Below, one piece after another: positions 30,506 through 53,971 of a DNA stretch of 64,000 nt. The position numbers and the translations under genes are program-made. Within the stretch, counting starts at the first letter, position 1, and each line of letters starts with the position of its first letter. Location: IMG/VR virus record IMGVR_UViG_3300024259_002152, positions 62,001-126,000 of that record; one strand, written 5' to 3'. The notes beneath the pieces were generated by a model. It was not told where the DNA came from, searched no databases, and was given only the letters and a program-made list of their open reading frames with translations.

Positions 30506-30760
30506 ATGAGGTATAAAATAGGTGATAGAATTAAAATAAGGACCTGGGAAAATATGATGAAAGAGTATGGTTCTTTTCCTGATGGAAAAGAAATTATGCT
30601 TGATAGTCCATTATATTTTGCGTCCGAGGTAGAGGAAGAAATAAATAAAAATTTCCCAGATAGAATTTTAACAGTCTTAAGCGCAGTAAGTGGGTTTTAT
30701 ACAATGGAAAAAACCATTCATGCATTCACTGATGAGATGATAGAGGGATTAGTAGAATAA
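30506..30760 (+). CDS. Small KOW/SH3-like phage protein, paralog of 52684 and 53671, without C-terminal tag
   Basis: MRYKIGDRIKIRTWENM...DRILTV...FTDEMIEGLVE aligns with MKYKVGDKVRIKIWEDM...DRILTI...WTEDMIEGIVE. Confidence 0.7.
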   Translation: MRYKIGDRIKIRTWENMMKEYGSFPDGKEIMLDSPLYFASEVEEEINKNFPDRILTVLSAVSGFYTMEKTIHAFTDEMIEGLVE

Positions 30761-30770
30761 TATTAGATTT

Positions 30771-31478
30771 ATGATTATAGATATAATATTATTAACTTAC
30801 AATAATGTAGAAAATACTAAACAATGTATAAATAATCTTTACAAATTTACTGATAATTTTGGTTTAGTTATTTTAGATAATCACTCCACAGATGGTACTG
30901 TTGATTATTTGAAAAAAATATCAGACCAAAATGATAATATAACTTTATTCCTTTCTGATCTTAATTTGGGTATTATTAATGGCAGGAATAGTGCGTACAA
31001 ATTATCAAAAGGAACTGACTATATCGTTTTTCTCGATAATGATCAATATGTTCAAAAAGATTGGTTGGATAGTTATTTAAAATTAATGATAGATAAAGAA
31101 TTTGATTTGATTGGTTGTGAAGCATGGAAAATGAGAGAAAAAGATTTTTACCCATATAAAAAAATAATAGATAACAATGACACTTTTTCCTATGTCGGCG
31201 CTGGTGGATTAATGATTAAGAATAAGATATTCGAAAAATTAGGATTATTCGATGAAGATTATGATTTTATCTATTTTGAAGATCCTAGTTTATGCTTTAA
31301 GGCACATTATCAGGGATATAAAATAGGATGGAATTATAATCCAATAATAGACCATAATCATAAGGGGGCATTGTTAAGCAATGAGAATAGGAAATATTTT
31401 CTGAACAATTGGAAAGTATTTCAGAATAAATGGCAGGGAAAAAGAATCCCTATCTTCTCAAATACTGTTGAAAAGTGA
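30771..31478 (+). CDS. Glycosyltransferase family 2
   Basis: IILLTYN, ILDNHSTDGT, NLGIINGRN, YIVFLDND (DxD), FDEDYDFIYFED. Confidence 0.9.
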   Translation: MIIDIILLTYNNVENTKQCINNLYKFTDNFGLVILDNHSTDGTVDYLKKISDQNDNITLFLSDLNLGIINGRNSAYKLSKGTDYIVFLDNDQYVQKDWLDSYLKLMIDKEFDLIGCEAWKMREKDFYPYKKIIDNNDTFSYVGAGGLMIKNKIFEKLGLFDEDYDFIYFEDPSLCFKAHYQGYKIGWNYNPIIDHNHKGALLSNENRKYFLNNWKVFQNKWQGKRIPIFSNTVEK

Positions 31479-31502
31479 AAAAGTATCATATAAAAGTATA
31501 AT
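31468..31502 (+). promoter_or_regulatory. Putative promoter (copy 2), ATG at predicted +1
   Basis: TTGAAAAGTGAAA at 31468; ATG at 31503 is 35 nt downstream; the -10 position reads TAAAAG (weak). Confidence 0.6.
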
Positions 31503-32594
31503 ATGAAACTAGGAATATTTTGTAATTTTTCATATAAGCATGTTGGTGGCTCTGAAAATGTTATTAAGAACATATCGGACAGATTAGTCAACGATTTTGA
31601 TTATGAGGTAAATGTTTATAGTTTCAGCGTTAATGCTCCTTTTTACGAGAATAAGGTTAGATATTTTCCTTGTAAAAAGGGAGATGGACTGTTTGCTCAG
31701 ATTGCTCAAAACGACCATATCTTTATTTATAGTGATTCTTTTTGGCAGCTCGATACATTACTCCAAAATATCGATAAAATCGATTGTAGGGCATCCTTGG
31801 CACTCGTAGGTGCTTACCATTTACAATCTCATCCTGAATCTTTTAGATTATTAAAAGAGAATATAGAGAAATTTAATCTTATTACCCATTCTGAGACAAC
31901 TCCTGACTATAAGTGGTGTATTGACAATAACTTACCTGTTAAAGTGGTGCCCAACGGGGTTGATTTGTCTGAATTTTGGGAAAATAGAGTAAATTTTCGT
32001 GAAAAGTATAAAATAAAAGAAAAATATATTATTCTTAGCGTTTTTTCATATTTTTTTGGCAAAGGGTTTGAAATTCTTCCCAAAATAGCTGAAAAACTAT
32101 CAGAGCATTTAGATGATTTTTTAATTCTACAATGCTCAAACACCTCCCAGTACCCCTATGATAAACCATTTTTTGAGAGGACAAAAAAACAAAGTAGAGG
32201 ACTACCTATAAGGTTTTTAAGGGATATTCCTAGGGAAGATATTGTTTCGGCTTTTAATTGTTCTGATGTGTTTTTATCGCCAAGTAAGAAAGAAGTTGCT
32301 CCTATTGTTATTCTAGAATGTAGAGCGGCGAAATTGCCTTATGTTTCTTTTGCTGTGGGGAATGTTGGAGAACAAGGAGGAATTCCTTTGATAGTCCAAC
32401 AAAAGGATAATAAGGGTTATGCTATAGTTGAGAAGAGAGATATTGATCATTTTTCTGCTGCTATACTTCAACTATTGACCTGTAAAGATGAGAGATATAA
32501 AAATATAGTAATAGAAAAAGGACAACACTTTATAAACAACATTGATTGGGACAATATAGTTCTTTTGTATGATAGAGAATTTAGACATGAATAA
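31503..32594 (+). CDS. Glycosyltransferase family 4 (GT-B)
   Basis: GGSENV, VVPNGVDL, SDVFLSPSKKEVAPIVILECRAAKLPYV. Confidence 0.9.
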   Translation: MKLGIFCNFSYKHVGGSENVIKNISDRLVNDFDYEVNVYSFSVNAPFYENKVRYFPCKKGDGLFAQIAQNDHIFIYSDSFWQLDTLLQNIDKIDCRASLALVGAYHLQSHPESFRLLKENIEKFNLITHSETTPDYKWCIDNNLPVKVVPNGVDLSEFWENRVNFREKYKIKEKYIILSVFSYFFGKGFEILPKIAEKLSEHLDDFLILQCSNTSQYPYDKPFFERTKKQSRGLPIRFLRDIPREDIVSAFNCSDVFLSPSKKEVAPIVILECRAAKLPYVSFAVGNVGEQGGIPLIVQQKDNKGYAIVEKRDIDHFSAAILQLLTCKDERYKNIVIEKGQHFINNIDWDNIVLLYDREFRHE

Positions 32595-32901
32595 ATTAAT
32601 AGGAACTACTGTATTTTATTGGCATGATGCTAAAAAGGAAATGCCAAAGTATGATAGGCCAGTTCTCTTAAAAAGAGAGCCACGTGATAAAGGCAATCCA
32701 ACAAGAGAGAATTTTATTAGTGCATGTCGGAAAATAGATTGGTCCGACGGGCAGGATTATTGGGATTATGTTGGGAAGGTATTTGAAGAATATGAGTTTA
32801 ATGTTGTTGGTTGGGCATATCTGGCAGAAATGGTATCTAATGATATATCAGAGAATAAGACAAGTGAAATAAATGATAGATTTGAGATATTAGATTTATA
32901 G
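32569..32901 (+). CDS. DUF551-like small phage protein with C-terminal RFEILDL tag (start probably ATG 32587)
   Basis: WHDAKKEMP...VVGWAYL pattern; ends INDRFEILDL*. Confidence 0.65.
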   Translation: MIENLDMNKLIGTTVFYWHDAKKEMPKYDRPVLLKREPRDKGNPTRENFISACRKIDWSDGQDYWDYVGKVFEEYEFNVVGWAYLAEMVSNDISENKTSEINDRFEILDL

Positions 32902-32914
32902 AAAAGGAGAAAAA

Positions 32915-33103
32915 ATGAGCAAAACATGTAAAGAATGTAAAGGTAAGGGAAAGATAAAAAAGAAAGAATGTGATACCTGTCATGGGTTTGGATGGGTAGA
33001 ATGTCGCTGTGGGTCATATTGTTGTAAAGAGTGTAATCCAGCCAGTAATGAGGAATCAACTATGTTATTTCCTGGTTGTTCGTTCGGAAAGTGTAACGAT
33101 TAG
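32915..33103 (+). CDS. Small Cys-rich (DnaJ-type CxxCxGxG) zinc-finger protein
   Basis: CKECKGKG, CDTCHGFG, additional Cys; AGGAG RBS upstream. Confidence 0.65.
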   Translation: MSKTCKECKGKGKIKKKECDTCHGFGWVECRCGSYCCKECNPASNEESTMLFPGCSFGKCND

Positions 33104-33106
33104 ATT

Positions 33107-33820: not shown

Positions 33821-33876
33821 AGGTTTTTGATAAGATGTATTGGAATAATATAAATGGGATACTTTGATACGGAGAT

Positions 33877-34350: not shown

Positions 34351-34358
34351 AGAATAAC

Positions 34359-35414: not shown

Positions 35415-35420
35415 ATACCC

Positions 35421-37518: not shown

Positions 37519-38472
37519 TTGATGATGGCACAAAAAGATGCTAAAGATATTCTCAGAGATATAAAGGCAGATATAGAAGGGGTAGACCCTAAAGACATAC
37601 AGTTTCAAGACTTACGTAAAAGAAGAAATAAAAAAAAGAAAGTAGAAAAATCTAATGAAAGTGAAAGTGGAAGTGGTATAATTGGAAACACTGAAGGTTT
37701 CTCACTTTTGGAAGTAGAGACTAAATGTTGCGATTATAGAGATATAAGTAAGAAAGGAAAGTTGAGAGAAAAGGGTAGTCTTGAGGAGTGGGGACCTTTT
37801 GATTTTTTTAAATTTGCTCATAAATTATATGTTAATCGATATCAGATAGAGTGGGATTTAAATATGGGGGGAAGTAGTCTTGAGATTAACCGGATTAAAG
37901 ATAAGTTTGTTGATGTTTTCGGTTATTGTTGTAATTTAATGATATATGATTATATTGTTTATTTTTTCGAATATCATATTGATTATTTTAAGAATAAAGA
38001 TGGTTTTTATTTTAGCCAAATGAAAACAGATTGGATAATTCTAACATTTCAAGAGACATATGATTTTAGAGAGCGTTTCGTTAATTATATGACGCAGAAA
38101 AAACAAAAGAATAAGAAATATCAATTAACACATGATGAAATTCAAAAATCTTATGATATGGGCGATACAACTTTAATTGGGAATTATGGAATTGTTATCG
38201 CTTTAAACTGGCTTTTGAAGATAAAGAAGATTAACAAAAAAGATGCGATAAAGGTTGTCGTTGATGCATGTAAAGATATGTATAAAAAGCATTTGATAGA
38301 TGTTGTCCAAAGCGCAACGGAGATATATTCTCCATATCCTGTTAATCTAATATTCAAAAGTCCTCAACTTGTTCTAAATAAAATAGATAAAAATATTAAA
38401 CTTAAAGTAGAGTTTAATGATAATAATCAAATGGAATTTTTACAAAAGGGAGATAATACGAAAGGTGCTTAA
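37519..38472 (+). CDS. Hypothetical protein
   Basis: 317 aa; basic N-terminus; TAATG-coupled to infC. Confidence 0.6.
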   Translation: MMMAQKDAKDILRDIKADIEGVDPKDIQFQDLRKRRNKKKKVEKSNESESGSGIIGNTEGFSLLEVETKCCDYRDISKKGKLREKGSLEEWGPFDFFKFAHKLYVNRYQIEWDLNMGGSSLEINRIKDKFVDVFGYCCNLMIYDYIVYFFEYHIDYFKNKDGFYFSQMKTDWIILTFQETYDFRERFVNYMTQKKQKNKKYQLTHDEIQKSYDMGDTTLIGNYGIVIALNWLLKIKKINKKDAIKVVVDACKDMYKKHLIDVVQSATEIYSPYPVNLIFKSPQLVLNKIDKNIKLKVEFNDNNQMEFLQKGDNTKGA

Positions 38473-38981
38473 TGGAACGAACATATAATGTTAACGGCCA
38501 GATCGAAGCAGATATAGTTAATTTGGTTTTGACTGATGGACAAGTTAAGAAGGCTATTAGTTTATCTGATGCACTAGACATTGCTGAAGATGAAGGGTTA
38601 GATGTTGTAGAAGTATCTTCAAATGGGGAAAATGGTATTCCTGTTTGTAAGATGATAGATTATGGCAAAATGATGTATCAACAAAGAAAAAAGAAAAAGA
38701 ATCAAAAGCAAATACAGCATGTTAAAGAGATTAAATATAATTTAAATATTGGTTCTCATGATCTTGGCATTAGACATACAAAGATATTAAAGTTTTTATC
38801 AAAAAAATATACTGTTAAATATACTTTGGAACTTAATGGCAGAGAAAGGAATATGATTGATAGTGCTGTAGTTACAATTAATAAAAATTTGGAAGAATTT
38901 AGAGATGTGGCGACATGGAAACCTCCAAAAGTTTCAACAGGTAGAAGAGTAACGATATCTACCACTCTTGTCCCAGTATAG
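38472..38981 (+). CDS. infC: Translation initiation factor IF-3 homolog
   Basis: VNGQI...ALDIAEDEGLDVVEVS...PVCKMIDYGKMMYQQRKK...VKEIK...HDL...KFL...GRE. Confidence 0.9.
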   Translation: MERTYNVNGQIEADIVNLVLTDGQVKKAISLSDALDIAEDEGLDVVEVSSNGENGIPVCKMIDYGKMMYQQRKKKKNQKQIQHVKEIKYNLNIGSHDLGIRHTKILKFLSKKYTVKYTLELNGRERNMIDSAVVTINKNLEEFRDVATWKPPKVSTGRRVTISTTLVPV

Positions 38982-39043: not shown

Positions 39044-40702
39044 ATGAAACCGATTAGTAAAAAAGTGAGCGAAGCGACATTAGACGAGATGTGTACGAAA
39101 AAATTTAAGGATGATTTTACAAATATTTTACGTTGTCGTTATCCTTTATTTTATATCACTCACAATGAGGAAAAAAGATTAACACAATTTTTGACTCACT
39201 TTTGTAAGGTCAAAGGTTATGAATGCTTTTTATGGGATAGCTATAATGGGCTTGTAAATTTGTTTAGTGGAGAAGAGGTGGCAGGTACTACTGAGGATCT
39301 GAAAAATAATCCTCTGGCTATTCTCGATCATGTTATTGGGGAAGGTAGAACTTTTGAGAAAAAGAAAACAAGTGTTCTAGAGAAGAAGGAGAAGGGTTGT
39401 AATGGGATAATTTATGTCCTGTTGGACTTTTTTAATTTTATCCAAGCAAATCCAGATATTGAAAGACGTTTTGTAGCATTGTCTAATTTGAATTCTATTG
39501 TTAGTACTGTTTGTACAGGTCCGTATTATCAGTCCACCGATGTGATTCAAAACATTTTACCGATGATTGAGTTTCCTTTTGCTAACAAAAAAGAAATTCG
39601 TCATGCTTTATATGATGTGGTTCATGGTGCTGAAAGAAAGATTCCTACTATTGCTAAAGAGACTAAGGCAATGGAAGAAGAACTGATTAGTGCTGTTTCT
39701 GGTTTGACTCTTATGGAGGCACAAACGGCATTTAGTAAATCTCTTGTGTCGCGCCATACTTGGGACACAGATCTCATTTTAGAGGAAAAGAAACAGATTA
39801 TCAGTAAAAGTGGCATGTTGGAGTATTTTGATAAAACTGTTTCGATGGAAGATATCGGAGGATTAAAGAATTTAACCACATGGATAAAAGAGAGAAAAAA
39901 ATGTTTTTCACAAGAGGCAGAAGATTATGGGATAAAGAAGCCTAGGGGTCTGTTGACTATTGGTATGCCTGGGTGCGGGAAGTCTTTAGTATGTAAAGCC
40001 ATTAGTAGTGTATGGAAAATGCCTTTATTAAGGTTGGACTTTGGTAAGCTTTTTGGGAATCTTGTTGGTGATTCTGAGAAGAATGCTCGGGAAGCCATTA
40101 AACAGGCCGAAGCAATTGCTCCCTCGATTTTGTGGATAGATGAAATTGAGAAAGCTATTTCTGGAGTTAATTCTAGTGGTCGCTCAGATGGAGGAACTAC
40201 AAGTCGAGTGTTGTCCACTTTCCTAACATGGATGCAGGAAAAAACCTCTCCTGTATTTGTGGTTGCTACTGCTAATAATCATGATGCGATACCTCCTGAA
40301 TTTTTGAGAGCAGGTCGTTTTGACGAGATCTTTTTTGTTGATTTGCCGAATATAGATGAGAGAGAAGAGATTTTTAATGTTCTTCTCAGACTTAGGGAAA
40401 TTAACACCAAAAAGATTAACATACCTTTATTGGCAGAAAAAAGTTCTGGGTATAGTGGTGCCGAGATTGAAAAAGGGATCGATAATGCTATGCTAGTCGG
40501 CTTTAGCGATTCAGCTAGGCCAATTGATAGTGACGACATTGTTACTGCTCTTGGTCAATTTAAATCTTTGTTTGAAATGAGACAAGCAGATTTTGAAGAG
40601 CTTAGAGAATGGGCAACAAATAAATGTCGTATGGCAAACGATGAACCTAAGAGAATCGTTAATCTAGGACAAGATAATTCTGCTAAAGATTTGGATTTAT
40701 GA
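39044..40702 (+). CDS. Ycf46-like AAA+ ATPase (degenerate N-terminal AAA domain plus intact C-terminal AAA domain)
   Basis: GMPGCGKS, ILWIDEIEK, ATANN...PPEFLRAGRFDEIFFVDLP; ends KDLDL*. Confidence 0.88.
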   Translation: MKPISKKVSEATLDEMCTKKFKDDFTNILRCRYPLFYITHNEEKRLTQFLTHFCKVKGYECFLWDSYNGLVNLFSGEEVAGTTEDLKNNPLAILDHVIGEGRTFEKKKTSVLEKKEKGCNGIIYVLLDFFNFIQANPDIERRFVALSNLNSIVSTVCTGPYYQSTDVIQNILPMIEFPFANKKEIRHALYDVVHGAERKIPTIAKETKAMEEELISAVSGLTLMEAQTAFSKSLVSRHTWDTDLILEEKKQIISKSGMLEYFDKTVSMEDIGGLKNLTTWIKERKKCFSQEAEDYGIKKPRGLLTIGMPGCGKSLVCKAISSVWKMPLLRLDFGKLFGNLVGDSEKNAREAIKQAEAIAPSILWIDEIEKAISGVNSSGRSDGGTTSRVLSTFLTWMQEKTSPVFVVATANNHDAIPPEFLRAGRFDEIFFVDLPNIDEREEIFNVLLRLREINTKKINIPLLAEKSSGYSGAEIEKGIDNAMLVGFSDSARPIDSDDIVTALGQFKSLFEMRQADFEELREWATNKCRMANDEPKRIVNLGQDNSAKDLDL

Positions 40703-41541
40703 GAAATATAGAAAAGGTTAAAAAACAGTTAATCTGTGATTTCGCTCAGAAATATTTTAATAAGGAAGAAATAGATTTAACAGAACAAGAGTTTAAAGTT
40801 ATTTCATTTAATGCGGAATTATGGGCATATGTAAAAAGTGTAGTCCCCGATGGGTTTGGGGATTACACTATTTTTAATTTTAATGGTTGTGCTACAGATA
40901 AAAAAGACAATAGTAAAACTAATATTATTTCTAATAAAGTTGCCTCGATTGCCAGGGATAAAGTATGCGCATATTGCTGGGGCTTAAGATGGGAAGAGAT
41001 ATTGCAGCAAAAAAAGAAAGATGAAAATTCCATCGAATCTTTTTTAAGAGATAGTAATATTATGATGCAGAGGGTAGAGAATGGTAATAATATAGTTATT
41101 CATGGGCTATCAGATCGACCTATCGGGAGAACAATGCTTGCTTCTATCGTAATGAAAGAAGCTATAAGATTAAGGGTTACTCATCATATACGAGGACATA
41201 CTTATGACTGGGTAGATTTTTCCAAGCTATTTCAAGCGATAGAGCAAGACTCAATGGAGTTGGCAGATTACAAGAGTTGTGATTGGTTGGTGGTTGATAA
41301 TATTATAAAAAAATCTCGAAGCGAAAAACAAACTACTTTAATGAGCGATTTGGTTGATCCTTTTTTTCTCGATAGATATTATAATAGACAACCTACAATC
41401 CTAGTGTTTAAATTTGATATAAGAGACAAATTGCTGAATATGGAAAAGGCATTTGGAGTCGGTATCGGTAGAATTATCGATAGTAGAAGAACATTTAAAA
41501 TTGCTTTAAGCGAGAATTTAATTAATAATTATATAGTATGA
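40699..41541 (+). CDS. DnaC/IstB-like helicase loader with degenerate P-loop
   Basis: NIVIHGLSDRPIGRTMLASIV, CDWLVVDNI, RYYNRQPTI; immediately upstream of DnaB. Confidence 0.65.
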   Translation: MRNIEKVKKQLICDFAQKYFNKEEIDLTEQEFKVISFNAELWAYVKSVVPDGFGDYTIFNFNGCATDKKDNSKTNIISNKVASIARDKVCAYCWGLRWEEILQQKKKDENSIESFLRDSNIMMQRVENGNNIVIHGLSDRPIGRTMLASIVMKEAIRLRVTHHIRGHTYDWVDFSKLFQAIEQDSMELADYKSCDWLVVDNIIKKSRSEKQTTLMSDLVDPFFLDRYYNRQPTILVFKFDIRDKLLNMEKAFGVGIGRIIDSRRTFKIALSENLINNYIV

Positions 41542-43772: not shown

Positions 43773-44195
43773 ATGGATAATGAGTTTATAATTAATTTTA
43801 CAGATATAACTCTTAATGAAACTGATGGAATTTTTGAAGATACAAAGAAGATAATGCTAAATGAAACTCCCCGTAGTGATAAGTGGGTATTGAGAAGTTT
43901 TATTACTATTGTTAGCAATAGTGGTGAAGGGTCAATGGAAATTCAATGTCATGGAGATAAGAATATATATATACTAGATTATGAGCCATCGATAGGAGAT
44001 TTATATTATAATCCTGATATACAGGCGATATCTATGTGGGCTCAAGAAAATGGATGGAATATTCCTCAACCTCATCCTGATTTAATTAAATCAAATAAAG
44101 AATTTTGGAAGTATTTTTACGATACGCTTGTGATAGATTCGGATTATCTCGATAAATTATATGGAGGTAGGCCTCAAATAGATGGGAGCAAATAA
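43773..44195 (+). CDS. Hypothetical protein
   Basis: 140 aa ORF, coupled to neighbours. Confidence 0.6.
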   Translation: MDNEFIINFTDITLNETDGIFEDTKKIMLNETPRSDKWVLRSFITIVSNSGEGSMEIQCHGDKNIYILDYEPSIGDLYYNPDIQAISMWAQENGWNIPQPHPDLIKSNKEFWKYFYDTLVIDSDYLDKLYGGRPQIDGSK

Positions 44196-44422
44196 TGAAT
44201 GCAGAAATAGCAATAGAAAAAGGGTATAAATATTTTTGCTTAAATTGTAATAGACCTTATAAAGAAATTCCTACTCAATGGGAAGAAAAGAATAATTGTT
44301 TAGGCGCAGAGATAGATATGTGTAGTTGTGGTTGTGATTTATTTATGTCTTTTGAAGAGTATTTAAAAAAGCAACAAGACGAAGGTCCAATAGAAAGCAG
44401 AATGGATATTTTGGATTTATAA
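44195..44422 (+). CDS. Small zinc-ribbon protein with C-terminal tag (IESRMDILDL)
   Basis: CLNC...CSCGC; tag at 44399-44422. Confidence 0.7.
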   Translation: MNAEIAIEKGYKYFCLNCNRPYKEIPTQWEEKNNCLGAEIDMCSCGCDLFMSFEEYLKKQQDEGPIESRMDILDL

Positions 44423-46197: not shown

Positions 46198-46412
46198 TGG
46201 AATATAAATGTCAAACAGTTGATATGTCTCGTATGATCGTGGGTTCAATGGGCTTTTTTAGTCCTATTTGTGAAAGTTGTTCTACTCAAGATTGTAGCAA
46301 TCCTATCGAAAAAACAAAAGTTAGTATTATGGGGGTTGTAAAAGAAGTAAAGGTCTATAGTAGAGGTAGTCAATCTAGATTTGTTGTTCAATGTGAAGGA
46401 TATATGCCATAA
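46197..46412 (+). CDS. Small Cys-containing hypothetical protein
   Basis: CESC..DC motif; TAATG coupling. Confidence 0.6.
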   Translation: MEYKCQTVDMSRMIVGSMGFFSPICESCSTQDCSNPIEKTKVSIMGVVKEVKVYSRGSQSRFVVQCEGYMP

Positions 46413-47203
46413 TGTTTAAATCGATTTGTTTGTCAGAAGCTTATTTAAAAGATCATAGACTTCGTAAAGACGCTCAAAAGCAATATGAATTAACTCAGAA
46501 AAATATTCATAAAATCAAGCAAATTGCTCTTAAGATGATATCTTATCCTGAGTACCAATTGGCTTATGATTATGTTGATAATTTATTTCCCAGAGTTAAA
46601 GTAAAAGAAATTTCTATTTATAAGGTTGCAGCAAAAGATTTGGCAAAGATGGGATATTCTGGAGCAGAGGGATTTTATGATCCTGTGTCTAAGATAATTG
46701 TAGCTTGCGGTGCTCGCAAATTATCTCAACCTGTTAATAAGAAATATTATATAACAGCCAAGATAGAGAGAGATGAAGTTATTGTTCATGAATTATGTCA
46801 TTACTGTTATGTCTTTGAGGGGAAAAGATCTCTTAGTAGTGAAATCAGAGAAGAATTTGCTTATGGTTGGTCAGTTGGGTATCTCAGACAAAAAGGTTAT
46901 AGTGATGAGCAAATTGTTAGATATAATTTCTTACCGTATTTGGTGGGGTTGTCGTATGACGAGGCTATAAAAAATATATTAGTGAGAAATAATATAAGCA
47001 CTTATGCATATAATAATCATTCTCGATATCAAAGAAAAGAATTTGAGAGAACATATTTTGGTAGAATTTTTGATAGAGCTAAAGAAATAGCTATGGAGAG
47101 AGGATTGAAGTTGATTGATATTTATTCCAAAAAAATAGAAGAAGGGACAGGGTTAATAGACGAAGAAGTCGATTGTGATCGATTTGATATTTTAGATTTA
47201 TGA
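46412..47203 (+). CDS. HExxH (zincin-like) metallopeptidase with C-terminal tag (DRFDILDL)
   Basis: GAEGFYDP...VIVHELCHY...EEFAY. Confidence 0.7.
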   Translation: MFKSICLSEAYLKDHRLRKDAQKQYELTQKNIHKIKQIALKMISYPEYQLAYDYVDNLFPRVKVKEISIYKVAAKDLAKMGYSGAEGFYDPVSKIIVACGARKLSQPVNKKYYITAKIERDEVIVHELCHYCYVFEGKRSLSSEIREEFAYGWSVGYLRQKGYSDEQIVRYNFLPYLVGLSYDEAIKNILVRNNISTYAYNNHSRYQRKEFERTYFGRIFDRAKEIAMERGLKLIDIYSKKIEEGTGLIDEEVDCDRFDILDL

Positions 47204-47748: not shown

Positions 47749-48108
47749 ATGAGATTTATACGTAAAGAGTTTATAGTTACTACTATATTTAATAAAGAAT
47801 TAACAGAGAGGGACGAAGTCCTAATCGTTTTTAACAATTTATTAAATGAGAGGATAGAGTTCGCTATGACTATGAAGAAGTATATGCCTATGCAACAAGA
47901 CTATTTCAATATGAGTTTTGAAAAAGTTAGGGTGAAGAGAATCAACGATGATGATACTGTTGATTTGTTAGCTTTCAAGAGTGGGGTTAAAACTAACATA
48001 AAGGGGGTTCCTTTTGATCATATCATAGAAGTAAATGCGACTACTAAAAAACATAAAATTTTAGATATTGACTCCGATTTAAATCGTTTTGATATATTAG
48101 ACTTGTAA
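47749..48108 (+). CDS. Hypothetical protein with C-terminal tag (NRFDILDL)
   Basis: 119 aa. Confidence 0.7.
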   Translation: MRFIRKEFIVTTIFNKELTERDEVLIVFNNLLNERIEFAMTMKKYMPMQQDYFNMSFEKVRVKRINDDDTVDLLAFKSGVKTNIKGVPFDHIIEVNATTKKHKILDIDSDLNRFDILDL

Positions 48109-48815
48109 TGACAGAAGAAGTAAAAAAAGAAGTAAAAGAATTAATAGATCAATATAAATTAGATTGTTCTATTGAAGAGTTTAAAAACAAAGCAAATTGG
48201 GAAAAAATTTCTCATTATGACTTCCTTTCAGAAGATTTTATTAGAGAATTTCAAGATGAAGTACATTGGGAATATCTTTGTTTTTATCAACTATTGCCAG
48301 AAGACTTTATTAGAGAATTTAAAGACGAGGTACATTGGGATAATGTTTTTATATGTCAAAAAATATCAGAGAATTTTATTAGAGAATTTAAGGATAAAGC
48401 AAGTTGGAGAGAAATTTCTTATTATCAAGAATTATCAGAGAATTTTATTAGAGAATTTAAAGATGAAGTAAATTGGAACAATATTTGTCAGAAACAAAAG
48501 TTATCAGAGAATTTTATTAGAGAATTTCAGGATAGGGTAAATTGGCATTGGACTCCCTTTTATCAAACCTTATCAGAAGATTTTATTAGAGAGTTTCAAG
48601 ATAAAGTAGATTGGGTGGCTGTATCTTTTTGTCAAGTATTATCAGAAGATTTTATCAGGGATTTTAGAGACAAGATTTCTTTAGGGTATTTATCGAGTAA
48701 TCAAAAAATAAATGTCTCAGAAGAATTTCGAAAAGGAATAAAAAATGGAAAAATATTACCTCCTCCAATAAAACCATTTTCTTTTGGTAATAGAGTAGAA
48801 ATGTTGGACTTATAA
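48108..48815 (+). CDS. 23-aa tryptophan-repeat protein (7 repeats) with C-terminal tag (NRVEMLDL)
   Basis: W-x6-Q-x-LSE[D/N]FIREF-x-D-x-V-x repeated; tag at 48792-48815. Confidence 0.85.
   Translation: MTEEVKKEVKELIDQYKLDCSIEEFKNKANWEKISHYDFLSEDFIREFQDEVHWEYLCFYQLLPEDFIREFKDEVHWDNVFICQKISENFIREFKDKASWREISYYQELSENFIREFKDEVNWNNICQKQKLSENFIREFQDRVNWHWTPFYQTLSEDFIREFQDKVDWVAVSFCQVLSEDFIRDFRDKISLGYLSSNQKINVSEEFRKGIKNGKILPPPIKPFSFGNRVEMLDL
48198..48680 (+). repeat. Seven imperfect 69-bp tandem repeats (core TCAGA[A/G][G/A]ATTTTATTAGAGAATTT)
   Basis: Visible in DNA and in protein; first Trp codon at 48198. Confidence 0.85.
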
Positions 48816-49162
48816 TGTATAGAGTTGTAGTATTAAAAGAGAAAGATAATAGTTGTTCAGGTTGTTTTGGAAAATCACTTGGATTCTGCTCGAGTTATCA
48901 GTGCCTTACAGGAAATACCTCTTCTGATAGGTCCACTACTGCTTGTATTAATAAAAACAAAGATATTAATAGATATGTCCAGGGTTTTTTGAGATCAAAA
49001 GCACAAGTCCTAAATGACTATAATAGCACAGAAGAAGTTATTAATTCGTTCATAAGATATCTAGAAAATATTGGTAGTACAGATGATGATGCTATTATTG
49101 TAGAAGAAAAGGAAGAAAAAGAAGAAATTATTGAAGACAGATTCGAAATGTTGGATTTGTAA
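48815..49162 (+). CDS. Cys-cluster hypothetical protein with C-terminal tag (IEDRFEMLDL)
   Basis: CSGC...C...C...C; 115 aa. Confidence 0.7.
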   Translation: MYRVVVLKEKDNSCSGCFGKSLGFCSSYQCLTGNTSSDRSTTACINKNKDINRYVQGFLRSKAQVLNDYNSTEEVINSFIRYLENIGSTDDDAIIVEEKEEKEEIIEDRFEMLDL

Positions 49163-49650
49163 TGACAGAAAAAGTAAAAAAAGAAGTAGAAGAAATAATA
49201 AAAGAATATAAATCACAAGTTTCTGTTAGTTATATTCGGGCATTTGAAGATCAGAAATTTGAAAGTCAGGCATTTTGGCAGTCTATTTCTCAATTCCAAA
49301 TTTTATCAGAAGATTTTATTAGAGAATTTCAAGATAAAGTATGGTGGTATGCTATTTCTTGGCATCAAAAATTATTAGAAGATTTTATTAGGGAATTTAA
49401 AGATGAAATAAATTGGTATCAAATTTTTTTACATCAAAAATTATCAGAAGGTTTTATTAGGGAGATTACTGAGAACTTGAAAGACGACAAGAAGTTTTAT
49501 TATGAAGAAAATTTAAGATGTTTACTTAGAAACAAAAATATACCAAATCAAATAAGAAAAGAGATAAATAATTATGGAAAAATATTACCTCCTCGTGGTC
49601 CAATAAAATTATTTTCTTTTAGTGATAGAGCAGAAATGTTGGACTTATGA
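49162..49650 (+). CDS. Tryptophan-repeat protein paralog (3 repeats) with tag (DRAEMLDL)
   Basis: Shares N-terminus MTExVKKEV and C-terminal GKILPP...FSF with 48108. Confidence 0.8.
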   Translation: MTEKVKKEVEEIIKEYKSQVSVSYIRAFEDQKFESQAFWQSISQFQILSEDFIREFQDKVWWYAISWHQKLLEDFIREFKDEINWYQIFLHQKLSEGFIREITENLKDDKKFYYEENLRCLLRNKNIPNQIRKEINNYGKILPPRGPIKLFSFSDRAEMLDL

Positions 49651-50165
49651 CAGAAGAATTAAAAAAAGAAATAGAAGAAATAATAAGAATTGAGAATCTT
49701 AGTTGTTCTGTAGAAGAATTTATTATAGAGGCAAATGATCCTATTTATAGAATTCCCATAGAAGAAGTTCCTTCTATGGAGGGGAAGAAAAGGGTGTGTA
49801 TAAAAACTACTCTGTGGAGTAGAATTTGTCAACATTGTAGTTTATCAGAAGATTTGATGAGAGAATTTATTGAATTACTTCATTGGCCTGGTGTATCTTG
49901 TCATCAAAAATTATCAATAGAATTTGTTAGAGAGTTTAAACACAAAATTCATTGGTATTGGCATACTCATAGAACAGATTTGTCTTATGATTTTATTTTA
50001 GAATTTGAAAAATATTTAGATTGGGAATATTTGATGAAAAAGAAATATTATATATCTGATAATCAAGGTTTTTTTAATGGTGATTTAGATTTTTCTTTAG
50101 AAGAATATAAAAGATTTAAAGAAGAAAATAAAATTCATAGTAGATTTGGTATTTTGGACTTATGA
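49647..50165 (+). CDS. Divergent tryptophan-repeat protein (3 repeats) with tag (SRFGILDL)
   Basis: WSRICQHCSLSEDLMREF, WPGVSCHQKLSIEFVREF, WYWHTHRTDLSYDFILEF. Confidence 0.75.
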   Translation: MTEELKKEIEEIIRIENLSCSVEEFIIEANDPIYRIPIEEVPSMEGKKRVCIKTTLWSRICQHCSLSEDLMREFIELLHWPGVSCHQKLSIEFVREFKHKIHWYWHTHRTDLSYDFILEFEKYLDWEYLMKKKYYISDNQGFFNGDLDFSLEEYKRFKEENKIHSRFGILDL

Positions 50166-50189
50166 AGAAATGGTTGAAGGAAAGAGGTT

Positions 50190-51605
50190 ATGAAATACAA
50201 TAATAAAGATTTTGTTCACTTTCACACACATTCGGAATTTAGTCAGTTTGACGGTTTGGCCAAGGTAGATGATCTTGTTCTTCAAGCTCGAAAGATGGGA
50301 TTTCCATCATTAGCACTTACGGACCATGGATCGGTTATGGGCTGGGTTAAATTTCTCCAGGCAGCAAGAGCTACTAAGGACAAAAAAGGGAAAGATATTC
50401 CTTACGCTCCTATTAAACCTATCCTTGGTTGTGAATTTTATCTGGCTCGAAAAATGAGTATAGGTCAAAATGAGGAGAAAAGAGATACTGATCTTATAAA
50501 AAAATGGCAGCCCGATGGGAGAAGAGGAAATAGACATTTGAATCTCTATGCTATGAATTTTGAAGGATATAAGAATGTATGTCGTATGTCCCAAAGGTCT
50601 TTTACCGAGGGTTTTTATTATGATGCACGTATCGATATTGATTTAATATCAAAACACTCTAAAGGAGTAATGTGTGGTTCAGCATGTCTATCTAGCGTTA
50701 TTAACGCTAATTTAATGTATGGTCGTTACAACCAAGCTAAACAGGTTTGTGGTGTTTTGAATGAGATATTTGATGGTAATTTTTTTCTAGAAATAATGTA
50801 TCATGGGATTAGGGAAGAAAGAGAAATTATTCCTTTAATCTTAAAATTATCATCAGAATTAGATATTCCTGTAGTTGCTACGAATGATTCTCACTACATT
50901 TATAAGGATCAAGGAGAATCTCAAGAAGTCCTATTGTGTATGTCTCAGCAAAGATGTGTTAAAGATCCAAAGAGATTAAAATTTGGTCATATGGAGTTCT
51001 ATCTAAAAAGTGCAGAAGAAATGGGCAGGATGTTTGGGCATATCCCTCATAGTTTGACTAATTCTGTTGCTCTTGCGGAGAGAATTAATACTAAAGATAT
51101 AGAAGATAACCTTTTTGGGGGCATGAGACTGCCAAAGTTCGATATACCTGAAAAGTATAAAAGTCCTTATGATTATTTATCTGATTTAGCATGGCAAGGC
51201 ATGAAAAGAATAGGTTGGGATCAGAGTAAAGAGCATGTTGAAGCACTAAAAAAAGAGTTAGAAGATGTTCTGGTCGCTCAAGAAAATAATAATTATGATT
51301 TCTCAACTTATTTTCTAATTGTTCGTGATTACATTCTTGACGCAAAGGAAAAGGGTGTTTTGGTGGGTTGCGGTAGAGGGAGTGGTTATGCTAGTGTGCT
51401 ATTAAGATGTATTGAAATTACTTATGGAGTTGATCCATTAAAATATGGACTTCTTTGGGAAAGGTTTTTAGGATTTGATTCTAAGAAGTTTATTAAAGAG
51501 TCAGATTTCGGCTTTGAAGAAGATTTGGTGCAGGCGGCGGCAGATAAAGATTTAGGAGGAGATAGAGAGTTAGAAGATGATTTGGGAGGGGTAGATAGAT
51601 ATTAA
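50190..51605 (+). CDS. dnaE: DNA polymerase III alpha, N-terminal fragment (PHP domain to ERFL)
   Basis: FVHFHTHSEFSQFDG, LTDHG, PILGCEFY, ATNDSHY, YFLIVRDYI, VGCGRGS, DPLKYGLLWERFL, then an acidic tail and stop. Confidence 0.93.
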   Translation: MKYNNKDFVHFHTHSEFSQFDGLAKVDDLVLQARKMGFPSLALTDHGSVMGWVKFLQAARATKDKKGKDIPYAPIKPILGCEFYLARKMSIGQNEEKRDTDLIKKWQPDGRRGNRHLNLYAMNFEGYKNVCRMSQRSFTEGFYYDARIDIDLISKHSKGVMCGSACLSSVINANLMYGRYNQAKQVCGVLNEIFDGNFFLEIMYHGIREEREIIPLILKLSSELDIPVVATNDSHYIYKDQGESQEVLLCMSQQRCVKDPKRLKFGHMEFYLKSAEEMGRMFGHIPHSLTNSVALAERINTKDIEDNLFGGMRLPKFDIPEKYKSPYDYLSDLAWQGMKRIGWDQSKEHVEALKKELEDVLVAQENNNYDFSTYFLIVRDYILDAKEKGVLVGCGRGSGYASVLLRCIEITYGVDPLKYGLLWERFLGFDSKKFIKESDFGFEEDLVQAAADKDLGGDRELEDDLGGVDRY

Positions 51606-51619
51606 AGATTGGAAAAATA

Positions 51620-51880
51620 ATGACAGACAAAAAAGAAAAATTTAATATAGGGTGGGGAGACAGACGGGTAGGAGTTATTGGAAAAGATGGAGAAATGATA
51701 GGCAATTTTGTTGTTTTTGACCCCAAAACAAGAATGTTGAAATCTGTTGATGAAAAAGGAGAAGTAGTAAATTTAATTATGGATGCCGATTGTAGGACAT
51801 GGATTCCAGAAGAAATAGAGAAAAAAGAAACAGAAGAGGATATAGGGATAGAGAATCGTTCAGATATTTTGGATATTTGA
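51620..51880 (+). CDS. Hypothetical protein with tag (IENRSDILDI)
   Basis: 86 aa. Confidence 0.7.
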   Translation: MTDKKEKFNIGWGDRRVGVIGKDGEMIGNFVVFDPKTRMLKSVDEKGEVVNLIMDADCRTWIPEEIEKKETEEDIGIENRSDILDI

Positions 51881-51997
51881 AGAAAGTAGATAGATATTAG
51901 TGCAGAGAAGAAAGAGATAATATATCTAAACTTTAGTAATGAATGTTCTATTTGGAAGATTAGTTCTATCATTAACAAAAGGGATGTGAAACATTTT

Positions 51998-52153
51998 ATG
52001 ATAGATGATAATAAATGTTTTGTTATAGGGTGTCTTGGTGTTAATGAAGAAGCATATGTAGGAGAATATGTGTTTTTCAGAGATTTTAATCATTGTCTGA
52101 GGTTTAAAAAAATAGAAGCAATTCATGATAGATTTGAGATAATGGACTTATAG
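51998..52153 (+). CDS. Small ORF missed by the track, with tag (MIDDNKCF...IHDRFEIMDL); frame is open back to 51890
   Basis: Hand translation: 51 aa from ATG 51998; no stop between 51890 and TAG 52151-53. Confidence 0.65.
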   Translation: MIDDNKCFVIGCLGVNEEAYVGEYVFFRDFNHCLRFKKIEAIHDRFEIMDL

Positions 52154-52162
52154 GAGAAAAAA

Positions 52163-52687
52163 ATGAAGAGATCGTGTCATATTTGCAAACATGGTGTTAT
52201 AGTTGAATATAAATATGAAGATGATTATGACGAGGACTATATTTTTAAAGGATCGGTTATATTTTGTATTGCAAATCCTCCTCTTTTTGTAGGGGATGAT
52301 GATCATCGTTTTGGGAATGATCTTCAGATCGTAGAAGGAGAAAAGGAGATAAAGGAATATTGTTATTATCCTGTTGTTTATAGAAATGATAATGAGAATA
52401 TAGAAGAAGATGATGAAGATGATGAATATTATGGTAATGGAGAGATAAGTGTTGCTCCTTGTTCTCTTTATTGTGAATCGGCCACTAATAAAACTAAATA
52501 TACGAAGAAATTGGAGAAAATAGAAAAAGAAAAGCAAGAGCAAATAAAAAAAGCAGAAACTAAGAAGAAAGCAGAAGCCAAGAAAAAAGCCGATAAGTTA
52601 CAACGTAAAAAAAATAATAAAAAACGGAAACTAAAAGAGCAAGAAGAAATGAAATTAAAAAACAGATTTGAAATATTGGATATATGA
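52163..52687 (+). CDS. Cys-containing protein with Lys-rich coiled coil and tag (NRFEILDI)
   Basis: CHIC..., KKAE repeats; AGGAG RBS overlaps the preceding stop. Confidence 0.7.
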   Translation: MKRSCHICKHGVIVEYKYEDDYDEDYIFKGSVIFCIANPPLFVGDDDHRFGNDLQIVEGEKEIKEYCYYPVVYRNDNENIEEDDEDDEYYGNGEISVAPCSLYCESATNKTKYTKKLEKIEKEKQEQIKKAETKKKAEAKKKADKLQRKKNNKKRKLKEQEEMKLKNRFEILDI

Positions 52688-53010
52688 AATACAAAGTAGG
52701 AGATAAAGTAAGGATTAAGATATGGGAAGACATGTTAATAGAGTTGTGTAATTATTGGGAGACTCTAGAACAGGCAAGAAACCGTCTTGAGGATCAACAT
52801 ATCTGTCTTGAAAAGGAACTTAACAAGGTAAATGTTGATAGGATTTTGACTATTGAAAGTATAGAAAAACGTGAAGGTTATTATTGTTATCGTACAAAGG
52901 AGAAAGGTTGGGAATGGACTGAGGATATGATAGAAGGGATAGTAGAAGACGTGATAGAGGACCGAATTGAGGATAGAATAGAAAGTAGATTTGAGATATT
53001 GGATATATGA
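52684..53010 (+). CDS. KOW/SH3-like small protein with tag (IEDRIEDRIESRFEILDI)
   Basis: Paralog of 30506 and 53671. Confidence 0.75.
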   Translation: MKYKVGDKVRIKIWEDMLIELCNYWETLEQARNRLEDQHICLEKELNKVNVDRILTIESIEKREGYYCYRTKEKGWEWTEDMIEGIVEDVIEDRIEDRIESRFEILDI

Positions 53011-53402
53011 AATTTATAGAAGTAATAGATTATAATAAGTCATATCCTCAAGGTATTTTTGTAAAAATTCCTATCAAAGATATAAAGAAATTTCATAAGG
53101 TTGAAAAATATACTAGATATTATATAGATTTAGATGATTCAGAACGTTTGTTAAAACGTAAGTATAAAGAACACCTTGGTAATCACATGTTTATCGAGAA
53201 ATCTGAAAATGGTCAATATTATAGTGCTGGGATTATGATTAATCATAAAACACAGATACAATGCCAATCGTCATGTGGTGGTAGTATATATTTTTATTTT
53301 TCAGATTTGGATTATGAAGAATTTGAGGGAGAAGCTCGGTTGTATGATTTGTCGTTACATATTGCCGATATTAATTATAGATTTGAGATATTGGATATAT
53401 AA
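53007..53402 (+). CDS. Hypothetical protein with tag (DINYRFEILDI)
   Basis: 131 aa; ATGA overlap. Confidence 0.7.
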   Translation: MKFIEVIDYNKSYPQGIFVKIPIKDIKKFHKVEKYTRYYIDLDDSERLLKRKYKEHLGNHMFIEKSENGQYYSAGIMINHKTQIQCQSSCGGSIYFYFSDLDYEEFEGEARLYDLSLHIADINYRFEILDI

Positions 53403-53404
53403 AA

Positions 53405-53671
53405 GTGACAGATAAAGAATTTTTACAGATGGTGAGAAATTCATTTGCTCAGGTTCGTAATAAGGGTAATTTGCCTACTGGTCCTGAGCTAATTGAATCA
53501 TTATTATCAGTTCAACCTATGACTGATGAATTAGTTGCAGAGGGATATACTAATGAATTAATAAAATTAGGAAGTTCTAATTTGCAGCGTAAAAAAGTTA
53601 TTATTACAGCATATATGGATATTAATTATAGATTTGAAATATTGGATATACAAAAACAGGAGATAAAGTAA
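53405..53671 (+). CDS. Hypothetical protein; tag extended by QKQEIK
   Basis: GTG start; ...RFEILDI then CAA where sister copies have TAA/TGA/TAG. Confidence 0.65.
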   Translation: MTDKEFLQMVRNSFAQVRNKGNLPTGPELIESLLSVQPMTDELVAEGYTNELIKLGSSNLQRKKVIITAYMDINYRFEILDIQKQEIK

Positions 53672-53940
53672 TGAAATATAAAACAGGAGATAAAGTAAGG
53701 ATAAAGACAAAGGGTCAGATGGAGAAAGAATTTGGCTATTATGACGAAGAAAGCAAATTCATAAATTGTGATCAACATTTTTCTTCTATTATGGAAGAGG
53801 CACTGAATCGGCTAGATAGTGATAGAATTCTTACTATTAATCATTTAGAATATTTTCAAAATGTTAATTATTATTACATGAGGGAAATAGAGGGATTTTG
53901 GACTGATGATATGATAGATGAGTTAGTAAATGATAAATAG
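53671..53940 (+). CDS. KOW/SH3-like small protein; tag lies just downstream in the +1 frame (possible frameshift)
   Basis: MKYKTGDKVRIK...; 53930-53962 reads MINRFEILDI* in the +1 frame. Confidence 0.7.
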   Translation: MKYKTGDKVRIKTKGQMEKEFGYYDEESKFINCDQHFSSIMEEALNRLDSDRILTINHLEYFQNVNYYYMREIEGFWTDDMIDELVNDK

Positions 53941-53971
53941 ATTTGAGATATTGGATATATAGGAATAAAAG

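Follow-up and report, generated by a model that had tools for sequence, protein, structure and literature searches.

Genes and features at the locus

The window analyzed here is the whole stretch of 64,000 nucleotides at positions 62,001 to 126,000 of the IMG/VR virus record IMGVR_UViG_3300024259_002152, a 73%-complete record of a 351-kb phage with about 488 predicted genes. The features relevant to this study are listed in Table 1 and include three related open reading frames (ORFs), referred to by their first positions as 30506, 52684, and 53671, and a split Pol III alpha-type DNA polymerase whose two halves are separated by a gap containing small ORFs. Many of the ORFs terminate with the same 11-residue tail (PIxSRFEILDL).

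Table 1. Features of the window, with positions numbered from its first nucleotide.
Positions	Strand	Feature	C-terminal end or tag	Further observations
30506..30760	+	SH3-like paralog without a tag (84 aa)	MIEGLVE-stop
30760..30774	+	Relic of the 3′ half of the tag, out of frame	ATATTAGATTTATGA (ILDL + stop)	Overlaps the ATG of the next gene at 30771
32569..32901	+	Unrelated tagged ORF (110 aa)	INDRFEILDL-stop
39044..40702	+	Cdc48/p97-D2-like AAA+ ATPase		Considered as a possible reader of the tag, not supported
44195..44422	+	Tagged ORF, variant	PIESRMDILDL-stop
46412..47203	+	Tagged ORF (263 aa)	CDRFDILDL-stop
47749..50165	+	Run of five tagged ORFs (47749-48108, 48108-48815, 48815-49162, 49162-49650, 49647-50165)	RFDILDL, RVEMLDL, RFEMLDL, RAEMLDL, and RFGILDL	Divergent synonymous codons
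50190..51605	+	N-terminal half of the split Pol III alpha-type DNA polymerase		PHP domain plus start of the NTPase domain
51986..52153	+	Tagged ORF in the polymerase gap	HDRFEIMDL-stop
52163..52687	+	Tagged ORF in the polymerase gap	KNRFEILDI-stop
52684..53010	+	SH3-like paralog with an intact tag (108 aa)	VEDVIEDRIEDRIESRFEILDI-stop; tag 52987-53007	Linker stutter IEDR-IEDR-IESR at 52954-52989
53007..53402	+	Unrelated tagged ORF	DINYRFEILDI-stop	3′ end is the source or twin of the 51-nt segment
53405..53671	+	ORF with a masked tag (53630-53650)	Extension QKQEIK-stop (6 residues)	CAA where the twin segment has the stop TAA; G002 orthologue ends DIDNRFEILDL-stop
53671..53940	+	SH3-like paralog with the tag lost by a frameshift (89 aa)	LVNDK-stop	G002 orthologue ends PIQDRFEILDL-stop in frame
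53939..53962	+	Intact tag-coding sequence plus stop in the +1 frame of the preceding ORF	NRFEILDI-stop; tag codons 53939-53959, stop 53960-53962
53972..54505	+	Tagged ORF in the polymerase gap	DGRFNIMDL-stop
54542..56515	+	C-terminal half of the split Pol III alpha-type DNA polymerase		NTPase, fingers, HhH

The original prediction held that three KOW-like paralogs show the tag absent (30506, ending FTDEMIEGLVE), present (52684), and frameshifted (53671), and this observation is confirmed by our analysis. Pairwise BLASTP of the three proteins with the tag trimmed gave 36-41% identity over about 89 aa with E values of 1.5e-15 to 3e-14, and a tag-masked profile search found exactly five paralogs in the genome at E <= 3e-38. 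The frameshifted arrangement of 53671 is real sequence, since contigs from four seawater samples cover it with no substitutions and no gaps, although these probably represent the same strain. Two refinements are needed. The untagged copy is not clean, because the 15 nucleotides straight after its stop codon correspond to the 3′ half of a canonical tag, out of frame and ending in the usual ATGA overlap with the start of the next gene; this 15-mer occurs five times in the genome against 0.009 expected, in three intact tags and two such relics. The stuttered IEDR linker of 52684 is visible as peptide, but Tandem Repeats Finder does not score it at the DNA level.

The second refinement is that the description of the paralogs as KOW-like is only loosely right. 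A Pfam scan of all three at E <= 0.01 gave no match to KOW (PF00467) or to SH3_15/Mind bomb SH3 repeat (PF18346). The AlphaFold2 (AF2) model, with a pLDDT of 90, is a small barrel with helices that occupies residues 1 to about 89, starts with a KOW-like GDxVxI strand, and is followed by a linker and then by a 4-residue helix over the tag at pLDDT 69-81. The best Foldseek hits were the Mind bomb repeat, SH3 domains, YorP, and KOW-type ribosomal proteins, but these are weak matches, all at E >= 0.17, the best in the PDB (4tse) having a TM score of 0.44. The Atlas structural neighbor cluster "Mind bomb SH3 repeat" matched at TM 0.62, with PF18346 present in 31% of its members. The predicted fold is an SH3-like small barrel nearest to Mind bomb/SH3_15-type and YorP-like modules, which are common in phage proteins.

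A C-terminal tail shared by unrelated proteins

The tail is far beyond chance expectation: 35 of 488 predicted genes end in it, against 0.03 expected from its frequency inside proteins, and the 21-nt form has 7 matches in the window against 0.06 expected. It is found on at least 28 protein groups of this genome that are unrelated by BLAST, and it lies beyond a linker of 8-52 residues, outside the modeled barrel. Distant homologues of the domain in other phages lack the tail and carry other C-terminal domains instead. A 51-nt segment containing the tail is shared by the 3′ ends of the neighboring ORFs 53007 and 53405, which are otherwise unrelated, indicating that it was copied as a piece of DNA. 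The tail is confined to a clade of huge marine phages, where it ends about 7% of the proteins, mostly small proteins of unknown function: the coding strands of the phage records G000, G001, and G002 contain 28, 48, and 20 pattern matches, respectively, against 0-1 for the reversed-pattern control.

To determine whether the peptide or the nucleotide sequence is conserved, we compared the codons of the tags. Arg is kept in 29 of 29 copies by AGA, AGG, CGT, and CGA, Leu by TTA, TTG, CTT, and CTA, and all three stop codons occur. Over 139 tag DNAs from four phage records, all seven second codon positions are invariant and all seven third positions are the most variable. Of the 29 copies, 28 are in frame with the upstream ORF, and 27 of those are followed directly by a stop. 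Conservation has a period of 3 rather than 7, and variation is confined to synonymous or conservative sites, so the peptide is what is selected. The tail also varies between lineages, and neighboring genes with unrelated bodies share the lineage-specific variants, including extensions beyond the motif: RFEILDIR-stop occurs twice, and NRYEILDLRGYK-stop occurs twice with synonymous differences.

Ancestry and loss of the tail in the paralog family

The interpretation placed on the three paralogs, that the tag is gained and lost independently of the domain as a removable address rather than part of the fold, is only partly supported. The tail is not part of the modeled fold and behaves as a portable module, but independent gain and loss within these paralogs is not supported as stated. 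A removable address is a reasonable functional guess. In this family the tail is ancestral, since 142 of the 150 best homologues carry it, and the syntenic orthologues of 53405 and 53671 in a related phage, G002, have it in frame at the exact C terminus. Both paralogs of the window that lack an in-frame tag, 30506 and 53671, are therefore losses, and no gain is documented inside the family. The family tree is poorly resolved, however, with 3 of 148 inner branches well supported, so that the number of independent losses is a parsimony minimum on that tree, and its supported branches do not exclude a single change. Of the condition that had been set beforehand as counting against the interpretation, namely that the tag be ancestral and structurally integral to the domain, the first half is fulfilled and the second is not.

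The two losses occurred by different routes. In 53671 a one-base shift produced GAT AAA TAG A, where tagged relatives read Asp/Asn-Arg, whereas 30506 underwent a deletion that left 15 nt of the tag out of frame. Together with the masked copy in the adjacent ORF 53405, the three paralogs show frameshift, deletion, and stop-codon loss side by side as decay routes of such a tag.

Interpretation of the tail

We consider it more likely than not, with moderate confidence, that the tail, with the consensus PIx[SN]-R-[FWY]-E-[IL]-[LM]-D-[LIF] and located in this phage directly before the stop, is a translated, peptide-selected, and portable C-terminal short linear motif, and that the three paralogs belong to a five-member family that was tagged ancestrally. 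The paralogy, the excess of terminal copies, the spread over unrelated proteins, the codon pattern, and the ancestry and losses rest on the sequence analysis, whereas translation in these uncultured phages is inferred from sequence alone, and the function of the tail, including any binding, sorting, or cleavage, is likewise inferred. In this view, the tail would be held on a flexible linker and would dock on one common reader protein that co-evolves with each phage lineage, bringing many unrelated client proteins to the same place or partner, as an address or docking peptide. The sharing of lineage-specific variants by unrelated proteins points to one co-evolving reader, although the concerted variants could partly reflect gene conversion among tags, since the two tags of L087, one of the sequences with such a pair, differ at only one synonymous site. 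No reader, destination, or cleavage was found, and domain searches of the record detected no ClpP, proteasome/HslV, beta-clamp, PDZ, or recognizable capsid gene. We would rank recruitment or loading to a common site, such as the virion interior or a replication/infection complex, ahead of a degradation or unfolding signal and that ahead of self-association. The tag spreads and decays at the DNA level, its repeated coding sequence at successive gene ends allowing copying between genes, duplication, and loss.

A specific version of the address model, which we regard as unlikely on present evidence, is that the tail binds the procapsid interior or scaffold so that diverse small proteins are packaged and ejected into the host with the DNA. 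The predicted architecture, a short terminal helix on a flexible linker carried by many unrelated small proteins, matches that of cargo peptides, and the client genes sit in variable, expanding arrays, for example 22 in 20 kb in a 548-kb relative, much like the hyperplastic internal-protein loci of T-even phages. However, no capsid, scaffold, or prohead protease gene was identified in the record, and the tagged genes lie among replication and nucleotide-metabolism genes, not among recognizable structural genes. It is also unlikely that the tail is a degron read by an AAA+ machine, either the Cdc48-like ATPase of the phage or a host protease, giving timed removal of a set of early proteins. The motif is exposed at the C terminus after a flexible linker, as in ssrA-type degrons, and the ATPase lies in the same module and is conserved at 86% and 76% identity in the tag-bearing relatives. 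Yet no partner protease of the ClpP or proteasome type is present in the record, full-length homologues of the ATPase occur in mycobacteriophages while no tagged family member was found in the GenBank phage collection, and the only complex prediction gave no verdict. Furthermore, the motif is more tightly conserved, and carries lineage-specific extensions, more than we would expect of a pore-engaged degron. Homotypic association of the tails into mixed oligomers, a scaffold, or a condensate without a separate reader is very doubtful; the core is hydrophobic and acidic with a predicted short helix, and lineage-wide concerted variation would also be expected if the tails must match one another, but a motif of only 7-11 residues contains no segment of coiled-coil length.

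We also considered whether the repeated 21 nt is a promoter, terminator, protein-binding, or recombination site at gene boundaries, with the peptide as a by-product. The commonest coding form is a perfect triplet of tandem AGATTTN heptamers, the same heptamer tracts occur as noncoding sequence in Bacteroidota, Planctomycetota, and cyanobacterial assemblies, TAGATTTG resembles the Bacteroidota -7 promoter box, five exact 21-mers lie in the polymerase gap, and metagenome contigs break at the tags. This reading is very improbable and already largely refuted by the codon analysis, as Arg switches between codon families, the heptamer self-match (8.1 of 14) is close to what the peptide alone implies (7.0), and CGT-type copies break the promoter-like box, although a past or residual DNA-level role cannot be fully excluded. 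Equally improbable is that 53671 is still tagged through a programmed +1 ribosomal shift at AAA-TAG-A yielding VNDK-RFEILDI. The out-of-frame tag is letter-perfect and identical to two neighboring tags, a +1 shift at the stop would join it exactly, and the arrangement is stable in the four samples. However, the sequence at 53927-53941, GTA AAT GAT AAA TAG, has no prfB-like context, lacking both a slippery codon of the CUU-UGA-C type and an upstream Shine-Dalgarno-like element, and no close relative was found to show conservation of the shift site. Simple decay is common here, the tag of the neighboring gene being disrupted by a different lesion and another relic existing elsewhere.

A more far-reaching possibility, which we offer only tentatively, is that the tail is the address label of a so far undescribed protein-sorting or docking system of huge marine phages, in which a single lineage-specific reader would collect dozens of unrelated small accessory proteins (35 here and about 50 in the 548-kb relative) at one destination, such as the capsid interior or an infection compartment, and the variable gene arrays would be a reservoir of interchangeable, tag-addressed cargo. 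Terminal address peptides are known in cells (PTS1 and the encapsulin and microcompartment cargo peptides) and in one phage system (the T4 capsid targeting sequence), but a C-terminal tag carried by about 7% of a phage proteome has not been described to our knowledge, and we found no literature on this tail. The tag gives an immediate handle on the "dark matter" of huge-phage genomes, as it groups dozens of unannotated small proteins into one functional class, predicts a single reader, and offers a natural portable tag for experiments.

Comparison with known terminal peptides

The T4 capsid targeting sequence on internal proteins IPI-III, Alt, and others is, like the tail, a short conserved terminal peptide that is modular, transferable, and shared by unrelated, fast-evolving small phage proteins encoded in variable loci. 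It is N-terminal and is cut off by the prohead protease, whereas the motif described here is C-terminal in every copy and has no sequence similarity to it. Encapsulin cargo-loading peptides and microcompartment encapsulation peptides are C-terminal short peptides or helices on flexible linkers that address diverse cargo to one shell protein, of the HK97 fold in encapsulins; their consensus is different (Gly/Ser/Leu-rich in encapsulins), and the clients of the phage tail are many more. PTS1 (C-terminal SKL) and similar sorting signals are proteome-wide terminal addresses read by one receptor and gained and lost by small 3′ changes, but PTS1 belongs to a eukaryotic organelle system, no compartment is known in these phages, and the phage motif is longer and sometimes followed by 1-4 residues. 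The ssrA-type degrons are also exposed C-terminal tags after an unstructured linker, and an AAA+ unfoldase is encoded near the phage tags, but the phage tag is gene-encoded rather than added by tmRNA, and its sequence differs.

Hub-docking C-terminal tails of replication proteins, such as the clamp-binding QL[SD]LF and the SSB tail DDDIPF, and the chemoreceptor NWETF tether are short terminal peptides on flexible linkers that tether several different clients to one hub. RFEIL has the same polar-hydrophobic-acidic-hydrophobic-hydrophobic pattern as QLDLF, but Arg replaces Gln and is invariant at that position (135 of 135), no DNA_pol3_beta domain was found in the record, and only some of the 35 clients, mostly of unknown function, lie in replication modules. 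The tail does not fit a PDZ-binding motif either, since 1-4 residues follow it in about half of the homologues and no PDZ_2 domain was detected in the record.

Genomic context of the tagged genes

The region lies at bases 62,001-126,000 of a single 350,866-bp contig with 33% G+C, which is classed as a virus record, is about 73% complete, and recurs in many seawater metagenomes. Nearly all genes are on one strand (449 of 488 crude gene calls). The tagged cluster is found in a replication and nucleotide-metabolism module encoding a helicase, a phage IF3, a Cdc48-like AAA+ ATPase, DnaB, a primase zinc-ribbon, PRPP synthase, RecA, and glycosyltransferases. Neither the cluster nor the family has a DNA or protein match among GenBank phages, and no family homolog was detected in bacterial and archaeal genomes.

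Features of the phage genome discussed in this section (window coordinates unless marked as genome coordinates)
Position	Feature	Details
6498-13163	Giant ORF, 2221 aa	No PHROG match
13165-19068	Giant ORF, 1967 aa	No PHROG match
21048-27275	Giant ORF, 2075 aa	
27284-30427	Giant ORF, 1047 aa	No PHROG or Pfam match
30506 (start)	Untagged paralog	Followed by an out-of-frame relic of the tag
38472-38981	Translation initiation factor IF3	Both domains present (Pfam E 1e-19 and 2e-13)
39044-40702	Single-ring AAA+ ATPase with a Cdc48/p97-D2-like domain	300-residue N-region of unknown fold
40699-41541	280-aa protein, no family	Overlaps the stop of the AAA+ ATPase gene
41538-43145, 56745-57056, 58339-59043; genome 257182-257625 (SSB)	DnaB, SSB, and neighboring replication-module proteins	Acidic-aromatic C-terminal ends (GDDFEFD, DDEFDFD, GDDWESNF, DDSDFDAI)
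49647-50165	ORF ending in RFGILDL	
50190-51605 and 54542-56515	Pol III alpha-type DNA polymerase split into two genes	N-half ends in DLGG[VI]DRY across the three related huge phages
52684 (start)	Tagged paralog	Tag at 52987; linker stutter IEDR-IEDR-IESR
53007-53402	Gene sharing its last 51 nt with the next	Stop TAA where 53405-53671 has CAA
53405-53671	Gene whose tag is masked	6-residue extension after the tag
53671 (start)	Paralog with a frameshifted tag	
genome 137797	Tagged paralog	
genome 254365	Tagged paralog	
genome 138576-138878 (8576-8878 of sequence L002)	ORF ending in VIYQY	ILDL and a stop in another frame; second relic of the tag, at genome position 138872

Three paralogs with intact, absent, and frameshifted tags

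The original prediction was that three related ORFs show the C-terminal tag absent (30506), present (52684), and frameshifted (53671), and this observation proved to be correct: the ORFs translate exactly as predicted. With the tag removed, pairwise BLASTP gave 36-41% identity over about 89 residues, with E values of 1.5e-15 to 3e-14, demonstrating that the three are homologous. A profile built with the tags masked found exactly five paralogs in the genome, each at E <= 3e-38, of which three are tagged, one is untagged, and one is shifted. After the stop of 53671, the sequence reads GAT AAA TAG ATT TGA G, and one base further on this gives AAT AGA TTT GAG ATA TTG GAT ATA TAG, which encodes N-R-F-E-I-L-D-I-stop. 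This 21-mer is identical to the tags at 52987 and 53379. Contigs from four different seawater samples cover 53699-54066 with no differences and no gaps, so the arrangement is real sequence and not an assembly slip, although these samples probably hold one strain, and contigs hide rare variants. No close relatives of the frameshifted paralog were detected in a set of 5.8 billion proteins, and one locus (L025) that looked like a variant strain is identical DNA with a different start call.

In the read layout at 52100-53000, many metagenome contigs from all four samples match only up to a tag copy, with loose ends at 52141, 52625, and 52995, and then diverge; the tag-coding sequence is therefore shared with other co-occurring genomes or loci and breaks assemblies. 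Apparent joints in the layout have short sides that start or end at tag copies and are best read as cross-matching of the repeated tag rather than as structural variants.

Selection acts on the tag as a peptide

Because the motif also occurs out of frame and resembles a Bacteroidota -7 promoter box (TAnnTTTG), we first suspected a nucleotide signal, such as a promoter, terminator, or repeat, but this reading was ruled out by the codons. In 29 genomic copies, Arg is always kept but is encoded by AGA, AGG, CGT, or CGA, Leu is encoded by TTA, TTG, CTT, or CTA, and all three stop codons are used. Across 139 tag-coding sequences from four related phage records, every second codon position is invariant and every third position is the most variable. 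The commonest spelling, AGA TTT GAG ATT TTA GAT TTA, consists of three tandem AGATTTN heptamers, and a scan of bacterial assemblies with the degenerate pattern mostly found non-coding heptamer-repeat tracts (for example GATTTTAGATTTGTGATTTTAGATTTG) in Bacteroidota, Planctomycetota, and filamentous cyanobacterial MAGs (loci L053-L086), which read in frame spell RFEILDL. One hit may be a true tagged ORF: L059, on a Kuenenia MAG contig, comprises 135 codons ending in VVSRFEILDL. In the phages, however, the heptamer self-match (8.1 of 14) is close to what the peptide alone gives under the codon usage of this genome (7.0), whereas other gene ends give 4.2. The heptamer appearance may hint at how the tail first arose, but present selection is on the protein and on its position, with 35 of 488 genes ending in the tag against 0.03 expected from its internal frequency.

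The tag is modular

The 35 tagged proteins (55-371 aa, median 119) fall into at least 28 groups with no BLAST similarity once the tail is removed, and almost none has a Pfam match. An AlphaFold2 model of a family member, built from 139 homologs, has a mean pLDDT of 90 and predicts a small beta-barrel with two helices over residues 1 to about 89, followed by a stretch without secondary structure and a 4-residue helix over F-E-I-L at pLDDT 69-81. The distance from the last domain block (MIE) to the Arg of the tag ranges from 8 to 52 residues and in 52684 includes the linker stutter. Distant homologs of the domain in other viral contigs stop matching at about residue 89, have no tag nearby, and are N-terminal modules of 170-336-aa proteins, and Atlas structural neighbors show the same barrel fused to AAA_5 ATPases, dUTPase, and DUF3310. 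Genes 53007-53402 and 53405-53671 share no detectable protein similarity (no alignment at E <= 100), yet their last 51 nt are 86% identical, with the 33 nt coding DINY plus the tag nearly exact. The tag has therefore been copied between genes as DNA.

The tag is ancestral in this family

A profile search of 1.84 billion representative proteins found 1,477 family members (E <= 1e-3). Of the best 150, 74 carry the motif at the exact C terminus, 68 carry it followed by 1-4 polar residues, and only 8 lack it. Two related huge-phage records were examined, G001 (548 kb) and G002 (298 kb), both of which have the Pol III alpha-type polymerase split at the same point as in the window, with small tagged genes in the gap. 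The cargo of small tagged genes in the gap is different in each of the three phages. In G001 (locus L030), the gap also holds a 345-aa ORF and a 110-aa ORF whose end duplicates the end of the polymerase N-half, and in G002 (locus L031), the C-half is interrupted twice more. The G002 syntenic orthologs of window genes 53405 and 53671 (35-36% identical) end in frame in DIDNRFEILDL and PIQDRFEILDL, respectively, so the shift in 53671 is derived, as is the extension masking the tag of 53405.

The apparently tagless 30506 is followed immediately by ATATTAGATTTATGA, the last 15 nt of a canonical tag plus stop, which is out of frame and ends in the usual ATGA overlap with the next gene. This 15-mer occurs five times in the genome against 0.009 expected: three copies are intact tags and two are relics, the second of which, the same ATATTAGATTTATGA, also overlaps the start of the next gene. 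A G002 paralog near the glycosyltransferases is found in the same neighborhood as 30506 but not in the same slot, and we do not call it the ortholog. A second family with an untagged paralog was considered but rejected, since the ORF concerned (49647-50165) ends in RFGILDL. On a domain-only tree of 151 sequences, the untagged state needs at least six changes, one covering the distant multidomain clade and the rest scattered singletons; the tree is poorly resolved, so this is a parsimony minimum on that tree only, and its supported branches do not exclude a single change.

Lineage-specific variants of the tag

The tag is confined to a clade. The degenerate coding pattern occurs 28, 48, 20, and 3 times on the coding strand of the phage records G000, G001, G002, and G003, respectively, against 0-1 for the reversed-pattern control, and one 20-kb stretch of G001 has 22 tagged ORFs. 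In IMG/VR, the common spelling was found only in these records and one further fragment. Other lineages use their own variant, which is shared by neighboring genes with unrelated bodies: there are two tails ending in RFEILDIR in L087, two ending in NRYEILDLRGYK in L090/L091, and tails ending in RFEIMDFD and RFEIMDID in L088/L089 (L087-L091 being loci from these other lineages). The two RGYK tails differ at synonymous sites (CGT/AGG, TTA/CTA, and GGG/GGA), and that variant is therefore held at the peptide level. This is what many clients coevolving with one reader would show, although gene conversion may contribute as well.

Candidate readers and interpretation

Screening of the phage record, which is 73% complete, for potential readers gave no match to ClpP, proteasome/HslV, beta-clamp domain 2, PDZ_2, or the capsid models PF05065 and PF07068, although the PF07068 control also gave no match anywhere, which makes that result uninformative. 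The one principled candidate is the AAA+ ATPase at 39044-40702, whose ATPase domain is closest to Cdc48/p97 D2 (E about 1e-55) and which is 86% and 76% identical in G002 and G001, respectively. However, it has full-length, 30%-identical homologs in cluster-O mycobacteriophages (Corndog gp96), and a complex prediction of its N-region (residues 1-300) plus the coupled 280-aa protein against a tagged member gave a score of 0.01, with no verdict, which is not evidence either way.

We therefore commit only to a general mechanism, in which the tail would be a linker-presented docking peptide bound by one common, lineage-specific reader. Among possible destinations, we place first recruitment or loading to a common site, of which virion loading is the most concrete version, ahead of a degradation or unfolding signal and, last, self-association. 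The position of many tagged genes among replication genes, and the polar-hydrophobic-acidic-hydrophobic-hydrophobic pattern shared with clamp-binding motifs, keep a replisome hub in play, but Arg replaces the defining Gln, and no clamp gene was found in the record. The original prediction also held that the tag is a modular add-on, gained and lost independently of the domain as a removable address, and this interpretation is supported only in part. The tail is modular and not part of the fold, and, within these paralogs, the history is one of retention and loss from a tagged ancestor rather than independent gain, with a relic still carried by the untagged copy; the reader, the docking, the destination, and the address function itself are inferred. 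Terminal address or docking peptides are already known, but literature searches for the motif and for shared C-terminal motifs in huge phages found nothing relevant and no description of this tail, which has real potential if the reader can be found.

Other features of the genome

The acidic-aromatic ends of DnaB, SSB, and neighboring replication-module proteins are a different class of C-terminal tail and resemble SSB/T7 gp2.5-type tails; the polymerase C-half in the related phages ends in VDMFEDLF or VDLFA. Outside the window, at about 128-148 kb and 244-264 kb of the genome, there is rich accessory content, including a UvrD helicase with an intein, a LAGLIDADG endonuclease, anti-Pycsar Apyc1, NADAR, NeuB/CMP-sugar genes, a histidine kinase with two response regulators, thymidylate synthase, RNA ligase, thioredoxin, and a papain-like peptidase.
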